Counted from the whole stretch's first letter, positions 34,397 through 48,250 are shown. The stretch is DNA of 63,724 nt, filler included, from Octopus bimaculoides (GCF_001194135.2; 5 parts of 5 records of this genome joined end to end with filler, not necessarily neighbours in it), one strand, 5' to 3'. Notes: generated from the letters alone by a model not told the origin. Numbers and translations are program-made.

Positions 34397-35036
34397 GGAA
34401 CAAGACCCGAAATTTTTGGGTAGGGGGTCAGTCGATTAGATCGACCCCAGTACGCAATTGCTACTTAATTCATCGACCCCGAAAGGATGAAACGCAAAGT
34501 CGACCACGGCTGAATTTGAACTCAGAACGTAAAGACAGACAAAATACTTCTAAGCATTTCGCCCGGCGTGCTAACGTTTCTGCCAGCTCGTCGCCTTCCG
34601 CTATTTGAAATATTATTTTTTACACTAGGAACAAGGCCCGAAATTTTTGGGGAGGGGCCCACTCGATTAGATCGACCCCAGAACTCAACTGGTACTTAAT
34701 TTATCGACCCCGAAAGGATGACAGGCAAAGTGGATCTCGGCAGAATTTGAACTGAGAACGTAAAGTCATAGGAAATACCGCTAAGCATTTCGCCCGGCGT
34801 GCTAACGTTTCTTATTTCTTTATTGCCTACAAGGGGCCAAACATACAGGGGACAAACAAAGGGATTAAGTCGATTACATCGACCTCAGTGCGTAAGTGGT
34901 ACTTAATTTATCGACCCCGAAGGGATGAAAGCCAAAGTCGACCTCGGCGGAATTTGAACTTAGAACGTAACGGCAGACGAAATACCGCTAAGGATTTCGC
35001 CCGGCGTGCTAACCTTTCTGCCAGCTCGCGGCCTTA
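34397..35036 (-). mobile_element. Three stacked family B SINEs
   Basis: Three consecutive cores; two tail types. Confidence 0.88.
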
Positions 35037-44429: not shown

Positions 44430-45120
44430 ATATGAGTAATGGATGCATCTTTTCAGGTGTATATTACTAACTTGGCAATAAAATGCATACGGCTGGACGG
44501 ATGGATCCTTAGAACATTCAGAACGAGAGAACAGGAAACCATGATGGACTTTTGGAGGACATTTGTCCTGAGCCGTTTAGATCACTGCTCCCACCTGTGG
44601 TCACTGCACTGTATAAAATTAACGACGGAACTTGAAACAAGCCAGCGAATCTACATAAAGAACATGGTCGCAATGCGTCACGTCAACTACAAGGAGGAAT
44701 TGAAAAACGAAATACTTTATTCGCTTGAACGAATGTGGAAAAGACACGCAGCGATAAACATTTGGAAAATCTTAGAAGAATTTGTACCAAACCTTGGTAT
44801 AGAAAGTTATACAAAAAACAGAACTGTGTGCCACTGCACAGTGCTGAAAACGCGATATTGTCATCAGGATTCAGGACTAAATACTGAAATAGGTTGGGCT
44901 TAAAAAGCCACAGATCTTCAGTATTATCCCACAAAGTCTGAGAGACCTACATGGGGTGGATGTAGGCATCTTCAAAGCAAAAATGGATCTCCTTCTGTCA
45001 AGAGAGCTCCAGCTGAACTTAGCTCGCGGCAAAAAAACACACAGATGAGGGCAGCAGCCTGAAACATATTCATTCACCAAATGCCACATGTCAGAGAAGG
45101 TTTAGTGAAACTTTAGCCAA
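44430..45120 (+). mobile_element. CR1/L2-group LINE 3' fragment
   Basis: GWILRTFRTR...LSRLDHCSHLWS...LYSLER...IWKILEEFVPN. Confidence 0.8.
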
Positions 45121-47047: not shown

Positions 47048-47404
47048 CATCCATCCATCTATCTATCTATTTATCTATCTATCTGTATGTCTAAATGGGA
47101 ACTTTGGGTTAGTTAAAATGTTTGTCATATGTTTTATCTTCTAAAGGCAAATTCACTGCAGTTACTATGGAGAAAATATTCTCTCTCGTGGTAAAAGATG
47201 TCAAACTCCATATCTGCTCAATGCTTCTCGCTTTCCGATTCTCAGTCAGCTATTTCTGACTCTTTATCCTTCCTCAATGGAAAATAACGAAGAGAGGTAA
47301 ATCTGGTCAGATTCAAAGACGTTTATTTTTGGCCGTCACAAAAAAGAATACTCAGTATATTGATACATATATATACATATGTATATGTAAGTATATATAT
47401 GTGT

Positions 47405-47602
47405 GTGTGTGGTTGTGTGTCTGTGTTCGTTCACCCAACATAGCTTGACAACTGATGCTGGTGTGTTTACGTCTCCGTAACTTAGCGGTTCGGCAAAAAA
47501 CCCAATAGAATAAGTACTAGGCTTACAAAGAATAAGTCTTGGGGTCGATTTACTGGTGCTCCAGCATAGCCGCAGTCAAATGACTGAAACAATTAAAAGA
47601 GT
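47405..47602 (+). mobile_element. Family A SINE 3' half
   Basis: gcttgacaactgatgctggtgtgtttacgtc...gactgaaacaattaaaagag. Confidence 0.85.
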
Positions 47603-47609
47603 ATACATG

Positions 47610-48250
47610 CCCAAGCCAAGTCCCCATTTATTTTAAGAGGGGGGGGACACAACAAGATACGCACCAGGCATTCCATTCATTTCCCAGCTTAAAGAAGCGA
47701 GCCCCGTCCTGTGCTCGGGTCAAGGCATAGAACGCAACCCTCAATATCAGCAGCGGGGCCCGATAGCATATCGAGTTTAGACCCGCCGCATCATGCTGGT
47801 TGCGTTCCCCATTGAGCAACATCAGATATCAGCAGTGGAGCCTGATCGTATATCGAGTTTACCCCCGCTGCATCATGCTGGTTGCATACCCCTTTGAACA
47901 ACATCAAATATCAGCAGCGGGGCCCGATAGCGTATCGGGTTTACCGCCGCCGCATCATGCTGGTTCTGTACTCCTTTGAGAAACATCAAATTCACTCATC
48001 CGTCCGCAAACACTCTCCAAGCTTTCCTATCATTTATAAACTCTCTTGCCTCTCTCACTCCAACACCTCTAACCACCAAAGCTTTCCTCACTCCATCCAT
48101 CCACACAAACCGAGGTCTGCCTTTGGTTCTGCTGCAACGCACTTCTGCCTTCCTCACCCTCCTCACCATCAGCTCCTCATCCATACTCTCCATGTGGTCA
48201 AACCGCCTCGGCATTCTATTTTGGTCGAGTCAGTCCGTTGCTAGTCTGAG
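47610..48250 (-). mobile_element. RTE-clade LINE 3' end with structured 3' UTR
   Basis: RFDHMESMDEELMVRRV..EV...R.KGRPRFVWMDGV...DRKAWR then TGA at 47996-47998. Confidence 0.8.
47730..47989 (-). repeat. Three 82-nt tandem stem-loops with SECIS/K-turn geometry
   Basis: ATGA at 47958, 47876 and 47794; AAA 12 nt later; mini-stem; TGAT partner strand. Confidence 0.7.

Follow-up and report, generated by a model that had tools for sequence, protein, structure and literature searches.

A window of 63,724 nucleotides (nt) of Octopus bimaculoides DNA (GCF_001194135.2; five parts of five records joined end to end with filler) contains on its minus strand the 3' end of a decayed long interspersed nuclear element (LINE), presumably of the RTE clade. 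The 3' untranslated region (UTR) of this copy bears three tandem hairpins with the layout of a eukaryotic form-2 selenocysteine insertion sequence (SECIS). Comparison with related elements suggests that the hairpin is probably a true SECIS, belonging to an RTE lineage that encodes a selenoprotein and preserved here in a copy that is 5'-truncated and dead. On balance, the evidence also leans slightly towards a broader proposal, namely that several invertebrate RTE-clade LINE families are selenoproteins, in which the cysteine (Cys) adjacent to the RQG motif (...TRQGC... in L1 ORF2p) and at least one further Cys would be replaced by selenocysteine (Sec) by means of a form-2 SECIS in the 3' UTR, and that 5'-truncated insertions scatter ready-made SECIS elements.

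On the first of these readings, the 3' UTR SECIS would recruit SBP2 and eEFSec, and upstream in-frame UGA codons would be read as Sec. Active members would possess a single open reading frame (ORF), encoding an apurinic/apyrimidinic (APE) endonuclease and a reverse transcriptase (RT), in which UGA replaces conserved Cys codons. One UGA site would correspond to the Cys that comes directly after RQG in the RT motif and has its counterpart in human L1 ORF2p. The terminal UGA, 37–73 nt before the SECIS core, would serve as the stop. In the window copy, slippage or template switching would have produced three tandem copies of the hairpin-bearing 82-nt segment, a triplication for which no function is indicated.

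Anatomy of the hairpin array and of the LINE copy

The features of the LINE copy, all on the minus strand, are the following.

47996–48214, minus: LINE ORF remnant, last 72 codons and TGA stop (47998–47996), from the ORF list, phmmer and tblastn
47746–47991, minus: tandem triplication of an 82-nt 3' UTR segment, from Tandem Repeats Finder (TRF), the unit alignment and the single unit in other family copies
47901–47966, minus: hairpin 1 (proximal), with AUGA at 47958–47955, AAA at 47942–47940 and UGAU at 47913–47910
47816–47885, minus: hairpin 2 (middle), with AUGA at 47876–47873, AAA at 47860–47858 and UGAU at 47831–47828
47730–47807, minus: hairpin 3 (distal), with AUGA at 47794–47791, AAA at 47778–47776 and UGAU at 47749–47746
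47602–47729, minus: conserved 3'-terminal tail (tatgccttgacccgag ... aaatggggacttggcttgggcatgtata), common to the family copies L004, L005, L009 and L010

The 72-residue ORF remnant returned 288 phmmer matches, all of them C-termini of LINE RT ORFs, and was aligned by tblastn with residues 881–944 of the full-length RTE ORF on contig L016. A Pfam scan and a word-indexed protein search with the same 72 residues gave no match. Upstream of ~48215 there is an in-frame stop and no RT similarity, thus the window copy is 5'-truncated and dead. The assignment to RTE is our assumption from the C-terminal motif, together with the label given by the first-pass annotation of the window. The single ORF of RTE elements, with APE endonuclease and RT, is predicted in L016 (Exo_endo_phos, weak at 20 bits, and RVT_1; 2e-19 to human L1 ORF2p structures), the window holding only the ORF tail. 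The published octopus element RTE-2_OV was considered as the window's family and rejected, since its 3' UTR is a microsatellite and it belongs to another family.

TRF delimited the array at 47743–47991, with a period of 82, 3.0 copies, 82% matches and zero indels. The units occupy 47991–47910, 47909–47828 and 47827–47746, and each comprises a spacer, the 5' strand of helix I and the hairpin as far as UGAU. Alignment of the three units yielded 62 invariant columns out of 82 and pairwise divergences of 15–18%, and variable columns (11 of 52 in the hairpin, 9 of 30 in the spacer) are not depleted in the hairpin. Every unit proceeds from AUGA through an 8-base pair (bp) helix to AAA, which lies exactly 12 nt after the core, then through a mini-stem to UGAU. 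AUGA and UGAU are in register in all three units, forming the non-Watson-Crick quartet of form-2 SECIS elements, (A/G)UGA opposite GA. The quartet, the AAA spacing with the mini-stem, and the maintained helices are those of a form-2 SECIS.

The three hairpins differ in their preservation. A perfect 10-bp lower helix, GAACGCAACC (47807–47798) with GGTTGCGTTC (47739–47730), occurs in the distal unit only, because the duplicated segment took in the hairpin and the spacer but, of helix I, the 5' strand alone. Hairpin 3, whose helix II has 8 bp and whose mini-stem has 7 bp, is the sole unit with this original helix I, which is lost from units 1 and 2. Helix I of hairpin 1 has just ~4 bp, and the minimum free energy (MFE) fold favours a shifted register of the GCG-repeat helix. 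In hairpin 2, helix II has a C.A mismatch and the mini-stem is weakened, and helix I (GCAAC/GUUGC) is borrowed from the start of unit 3.

The first-pass annotation had described this anatomy correctly, as form-2 SECIS layout in an RTE 3' UTR behind a UGA stop. Its three-unit array of 82-nt period was recovered by both TRF and the reading of the minus strand, its minus-strand consensus (AUGA, AAA at +12 and TGAT) holds in every unit, and its 10-bp lower helix is indeed confined to the distal unit. The distance of about 37 nt that it gave from the ORF's TGA to the first core was measured as 37 nt. The 7-bp apical mini-stem that it ascribed to the array is present in units 1 and 3, whereas unit 2 has five of the seven pairs.

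The whole array folded into three separate hairpins at -108.1 kcal/mol (z = -2.9), and none of 200 shuffles was equally stable. The z scores of the single units were -4.3, -2.4 and -5.2 for units 1, 2 and 3, respectively. Hairpin 1 folded at -31.9 kcal/mol and hairpin 3 at -41.5 kcal/mol, the latter with the core as an internal loop. A search with the Rfam SECIS_1 model (RF00031), which the first-pass annotation had named as a check, aligned all three units end to end, with 14.9, 23.0 and 23.0 bits for units 1, 2 and 3, but left all of them below the gathering score of 35 bits. The match of hairpin 2 had E = 0.077 in a search of 801 nt and that of hairpin 3 had E = 0.0087 in a search of 94 nt; by our own arithmetic, from the definition of the E-value over 4227 families, a 23-bit match in 94 nt amounts to ~2e-6 for SECIS_1 alone. 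The R1 scores of hairpins 1 and 3 were 84.4 and 87.4 bits. No Rfam gathering score was reached anywhere in the 22-kb piece of the window. A minimal SECIS descriptor (AUGA, AA at +11 to +13, a 3' GA, and at least 7 of 8 bp) matched ~1.2 times per shuffled 22-kb piece, and all three units stem from a single event. Taken by itself the window thus does not exceed chance, and any significance has to come from related elements.

In-frame UGA codons and homologous hairpins in related elements

The ORF of L016 (452–3307, 952 codons) has no frameshift, and its internal stops are just two TGA codons, at 1922–1924 and 2405–2407. At the first (LLNV-stop-F), L020, L022 and L023 have Cys. The second (GLRQG-stop-VMSPWLF) aligns to Cys in the same three elements, in a neighbouring RTE fragment on L017 and in human L1 ORF2p (...TRQGCPLSP..., PDB 8sxt), and the Pfam RVT_1 profile extends across it, with positions 5–122 before and 125–203 after. 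L018, from another sequencing run, also has this second TGA. The sole internal stop of L019, an element from a different sample with 68% amino acid (aa) identity to L016, is a TGA at the same RQG-x codon, and its frame is otherwise open over 443 codons.

Between L016 and L019 synonymous differences are saturated (pS 0.67–0.76, pN 0.15–0.21), and the ratio of nonsynonymous to synonymous divergence (dN/dS) is ~0.12–0.15 both upstream and downstream of the shared TGA. The low ratio downstream argues that the region past the TGA was translated throughout a long divergence. Cys codons take only 4.7% of the possible nonsense substitutions; the chance that two TGAs out of two fall on Cys was estimated as ~0.002, and that of the same codon again in L019 as ~1/218. 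Random inactivation appears a very unlikely source of TGAs at conserved Cys in the two lineages. All four families end the ORF with TGA at the conserved C-terminus, thus UGA is no general sense codon in the hosts. The family of L016, L017 and L018 and that of L019 each combine an intact ORF, UGA at Cys and a candidate SECIS past the real stop.

Two peculiarities of L016 were recorded. Upstream of the called ATG the frame is open for ~68 codons (L016:245–452) and encodes the first endonuclease motif, VVGQLNVCGC, without an ATG; either the translation start is unconventional or the start codon was lost in this copy. At the contig end (L016:3620–3695) lies a reverse-complement copy of the first ~70 nt of its own 3' UTR, which is either a second, inverted copy or an assembly artefact. 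Among the protein clusters reaching the RQG site, three of four begin exactly at MSPWLF, which is suggestive only.

Three further RTE families, represented by L016, L019 and L020, have a homologous hairpin at a distance of 71–80 nt past their TGA stop; they derive from unrelated samples and share 47–68% protein identity. The L016 type comes from SRR2591718 and SRR24908162, the L019 type from ERZ23495242 and the L020 type from SRR24736400, and the hairpins lie within L016:3360–3445, L019:1450–1530 and L020:3180–3255. The SECIS_1 score is 13.7 bits for the family of L016, L017 and L018 and 27.5 bits (E = 0.0016) for L019. AAA at +12 is found in L016, L019 and L020, and also in a very large fourth family, of which one ENA sample (ERZ27297570) holds 3778 ORF fragments or more. 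Its ORF calls extend into the 3' UTR in each of the three frames, and their back-translation gave a 3' UTR, ...TTACATGATGCGGTTGGGATAAACTGTAAAAAGGG.GCAACTACTGAA..., with AUGA-N12-AAA and with CUGA in register. The RTE family of this 'metagenome' (P0005, P0169, P0225–P0342) evidently derives from a host genome and not from microbes. Its 98-aa fragments had been called as bacterial genes, and its natural stop would be TAA or TAG, judging from Q/K/Y/S/E/L substitutions at that codon.

Ten hairpins were aligned for the analysis of covariation (alignment A3). Pairing was found in 84% of cells versus 71 ± 2% in shuffles, and none of 500 shuffles reached the observed score, although these shuffle statistics are inflated because seven of the ten hairpins belong to one family. 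Double changes occur at 11 of the 14 pairs, seven of them among the nine pairs of helix II, of which 86% of cells are paired. In slid controls, with the partner moved by 1–3 columns, 35–66% remained paired. Helix I is weak in units 1 and 2 and in L019. Among the columns without variation are the third base of AUGA (G), AA within the AAA motif together with the next C, and the second base of the 3' GA (A). L004 and L016 have as their MFE structure a SECIS-type fold in which the core forms an internal loop; for units 2 and 3 and L019 this fold lies within 1.7–2.5 kcal/mol of the MFE. The mini-stems have 3–7 bp. Conservation of the GA/GA core and of the AAA spacing over family members, together with covariation, was a further check proposed in the first-pass annotation; the hairpin is conserved over four families, and helix II covaries.

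Other copies of the window's family were compared at five independent loci in Logan assemblies of runs SRR118693xx. L004, L009, L010 and L011 contain one hairpin unit each, thus the triplication is specific to the window copy. In the first three the hairpin is placed between the stop and the conserved tail (tatgccttgacccgag ... aaatgggga..ggcttgggtatatg); the L011 contig ends at the tail start, with the beginning of the tail visible. The fifth locus, L005–L008, has a half-deleted unit followed by the same tail. The cores have decayed to AAGA and CUAAU in L010, AUGG and GAAC in L011 and CUAAU in L009. The AAA spacing is 12 nt in L009, 11 nt in L004 (a 1-nt deletion) and 13 nt in L010 (a 1-nt insertion, with the AAGA core), and the AAA of L011 is mutated. 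L009, L010 and L011 are decaying neutrally. The majority state of the family is still AUGA / UAAAC / CUGAU, which makes the motif ancestral to the window's family. Binding of the Sec machinery by the hairpin, and its past use by the family to which the window copy belongs, are our inference. The in-frame TGAs of L004 were considered as Sec codons and rejected, one of them being a TGG-to-TGA decay at a Trp codon in a copy that is decayed throughout. The stored proteins of L004 and L015 do not match a table-11 translation, and the gene caller's code reads TGA as sense. Such calling reads through the TGA codons of decayed eukaryotic repeats and is a caveat for ORFs from these collections.

The 3'-terminal tail is likely the site of RT recognition and priming. 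The window copy ends at ~47602 with ...gcatgtata, abutting another repeat. A terminal motif (a C-run and TGG..GGC.TGGGTATATG) is common to RTE families that otherwise differ in their 3' UTRs; it was located at L016:3305–3560, L019:1392–1680, L015:6396–6665, L022:3370–3395 and window 47602–47729. A microsatellite follows it, (TATG)n in L016 and L019 and (TAGA)n in L015. L015 shares the tail and has no hairpin. L022 is a Cys-type element with an ORF of more than 1100 codons, no in-frame TGA and no hairpin, and its stop, which falls inside the terminal motif, abuts the terminal tail TGGGTATGTATG. The part common to these RTE elements is the tail rather than the hairpin, which argues against the hairpin as a general RT-recognition element.

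Scans for the hairpin pattern returned nothing from viral contig DNA or from genome contigs, and a protein scan of viral contigs found no relatives. One metagenome hairpin scan produced only three matches, chance ones inside bacterial genes. A later protein-based scan of genome contigs led to the eukaryotic contaminant contigs L021–L029. These carry pieces of RTE and other LINEs and belong to assemblies whose labels are bacterial or archaeal (Xanthobacter, an Acinetobacter metagenome-assembled genome (MAG), Oceanicella, a Micrarchaeota MAG and others). The short contigs among them are most likely eukaryotic contamination, and L024 (406 kb) and L027 (71 kb) are long contigs with LINE fragments.

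Alternative explanations and surrounding sequence

Several observations weigh against a SECIS. None of the hairpins reaches the SECIS_1 gathering score (13.7–27.5 bits versus 35), and the L020 hairpin, with its GUGA core, gave no SECIS_1 match at E <= 10. L020 has Cys at both sites yet keeps the hairpin, and L023, a decayed and partial Cys-type element, retains a weak remnant, AUGA-N12-AAAC, of 8.6 bits; in these two the hairpin may have another or an additional role. The ORF of L020 (70–3114) contains a single in-frame TGA at 424–426 in the endonuclease region (WKEV-stop-SRM), which aligns to Ser (TCG in L016) and not to Cys. This TGA could be a different Sec site or a recent inactivation, or the hairpin could be a relic SECIS after a Sec-to-Cys reversion. 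The contigs available for the family of the window copy all stop short of the RT sites. The hairpin of the very large family was reconstructed from protein translations and not from DNA, and Sec machinery in the hosts of L016, L019 and L020 is assumed. The family bias of alignment A3 and the frequency of descriptor matches in shuffled sequence, both given above, belong with these points.

The strongest competing explanation is that the hairpin is the RTE's own 3' UTR structural element, for RT recognition or ribonucleoprotein (RNP) assembly, possibly as a kink-turn (K-turn) bound by another L7Ae-family protein, with an incidental or convergent likeness to SECIS and with UGAs that are decoded or tolerated otherwise. 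'Stringent' LINEs such as eel UnaL2 are generally known to have an RT that depends on a stem-loop in the element's own 3' UTR, and conservation with covariation, persistence in the Cys-type L020 and L023 and SECIS_1 scores below the gathering score would all suit such an element. However, the shared part is the tail, which L015 and the intact L022 keep without the hairpin, and the invariant single-stranded features, AUGA/GA and AAA at +12, are the exact SECIS determinants. Nor would a structural element explain UGA at Cys codons under purifying selection. We consider this explanation unlikely.

Read-through offers another account, in which the UGAs are leaky stops decoded by near-cognate tRNAs (Cys, Trp, Arg) to attenuate RT output and the hairpin is irrelevant or a general stimulator. 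Known stimulators lie directly 3' of the stop and not ~1–1.5 kb away, the hairpin accompanies ORFs that contain UGA and is missing from L022, which has no in-frame UGA, and two serial UGAs, as in L016, would give a very low yield without a dedicated mechanism. Leaky stops are thus improbable here, even though UGA is known generally as the leakiest stop and is readable by tRNA-Cys, read-through of UGA at a Cys codon would give back the ancestral residue, and retroelements often set protein ratios in this way.

The triple array could itself be adaptive, defining a three-SECIS subfamily in which decoding of several UGAs is boosted, as with the two SECIS elements of SelenoP. AUGA, AAA and UGAU are kept in all three units, and L016 indicates that relatives can hold more than one putative Sec codon. 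An adaptive array is nonetheless highly improbable, given that every other family copy has one unit, that units 1 and 2 are without the original lower helix and unit 2 has the helix II mismatch, that variable positions are no rarer in hairpin than in spacer, and that the three-unit form is known from one dead copy.

A chance likeness, in which an ordinary GC-rich stem-loop repeat sits in a decayed LINE tail and the TGAs of relatives are inactivating mutations, would accommodate the ~1.2 descriptor matches per shuffled piece, the single origin of the three units, the dead window copy and the random loss of the core in family copies (AAGA, AUGG, CUAAU), but is barely credible beside compensatory changes over four families, the same Cys codon as TGA in two lineages at saturated synonymous divergence and dN/dS of ~0.12–0.15, and ORFs of 443–952 codons that are otherwise undisrupted.

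The preferred reading thus remains a SECIS. Among the functions put forward in the first-pass annotation, Sec insertion gains comparative support from the hairpins in 3' UTRs of relatives with UGA at Cys, and the alternatives of evasion of nonsense-mediated decay and of a C/D RNP are left without any support.

Directly past the LINE end, the window at 47400–47601 (minus) is occupied by an interspersed repeat (ctcttttaattgtttcagtcatttgactgcggctatgctggagcacc ... ccgaaccgctaagttacggagacgtaaacacacc ...) that runs into (CA)n. It is tentatively taken as the abundant tRNA-derived Octopus short interspersed nuclear element (SINE); ARAGORN detected no tRNA-like head in it, and its sequence is in no paper of the searched literature. 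On the plus strand at 44439–44903, a 154-aa ORF resembles the C-terminal part of another RT of the non-long terminal repeat (non-LTR) type (...LDHCSHLWS...LE.SQR...); it has no Pfam match and probably belongs to a LINE of another clade that has decayed. At 34397–34812 lies an unrelated interspersed or tandem repeat, 1.8 copies of a 231-nt unit with 87% identity. Runs of N, marking assembly gaps, are located at 28.4, 32.4, 36.7, 42.1 and 43.4–44.1 kb. The density of microsatellites is very high, with 92 TRF rows in 22 kb, and the 22-kb piece is a draft scaffold of an animal genome rich in simple sequence repeats.

Comparison with known systems

The Naiad Penelope-like elements (PLEs) of spiders and clams encode selenoproteins, with 3–4 UGA codons at conserved Cys and a type I SECIS just past the stop (Craig et al. 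2021, PMC8557442), and their authors predicted that further examples might be missed owing to apparent stop codons (PMC8557442). This PLE case was the sole instance of transposons encoding selenoproteins in the searched literature, where no Sec-encoding non-LTR, RTE or LINE element was found. The statement in the first-pass annotation that no example had been described therefore stands for LINEs in that literature and falls for retroelements with a SECIS, Naiad having been described (PMC8557442). Naiad and the elements reported here are alike in being invertebrate retroelements whose ORF contains several UGAs at conserved Cys, with a SECIS, here a candidate, in a short 3' UTR past the true stop, and in that the terminal UGA near the SECIS acts, or would act, as a stop. 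They differ in type, Naiad being a PLE with a GIY-YIG endonuclease and a telomerase-like RT, whereas the elements here are non-LTR RTE LINEs with APE endonuclease and RT. The type I SECIS of Naiad was graded 'A' by SECISearch3, whereas the form-2 candidates here combine sub-threshold Rfam scores with comparative evidence. Sec is found at zinc-finger cysteines in Naiad, whereas here one putative Sec site lies in the RT motif RQG-x.

If the proposal is correct, selenoprotein transposons would extend from one reported case, the Naiad PLE, to the far more widespread non-LTR LINEs, and a Sec residue would be placed beside the nucleotide-binding RQG motif of an RT. Active elements would be taken for dead ones wherever transposable elements are annotated with TGA read as a stop, and LINE translation in the hosts would be tied to selenium supply and to the Sec machinery. 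The tails of 5'-truncated LINEs would offer a testable route by which SECIS elements spread into host 3' UTRs. Scattered in this way, they would be plausible raw material for new selenoprotein genes, for which the origin of the SECIS is an open question.

The hairpin shares with form-2 SECIS elements (RF00031) helix I, the internal loop, the AUGA/GA quartet, helix II, AAA at 12 nt, the mini-stem and the location in a 3' UTR. It differs in its score (13.7–27.5 bits versus 35), in being transposon-borne and in tandem triplicate, and as a candidate known from its sequence. The mRNA of SELENOP likewise has more than one SECIS per 3' UTR, and its pair serves several UGAs; its two elements are distinct, conserved and specialised, whereas the array here is a copy-specific duplication with degraded lower helices.

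The tandem sheared G.A/A.G pairs flanked by U.U are also those of a box C/D K-turn, with AUGAUGC similar to a C box and CUGA to a D box. A box C/D small nucleolar RNA (snoRNA) or canonical K-turn was nevertheless rejected, as there are no guide regions and no C'/D' boxes and the interior of the hairpin is closed. The internal loop has 4 + 7 nt rather than the 3-nt bulge of a canonical K-turn, and the best Rfam snoRNA matches were 8.7–11.9 bits versus gathering scores of 38–55.

The stem-loops of stringent LINEs, UnaL2 with its partner SINEs, resemble the window hairpin in that a conserved 3' UTR hairpin stands upstream of a short terminal repeat. They are placed at the extreme 3' end, where the RT recognises loop and stem, whereas the end of the window element is a separate tail shared with hairpin-less relatives and the hairpin holds the SECIS determinants.

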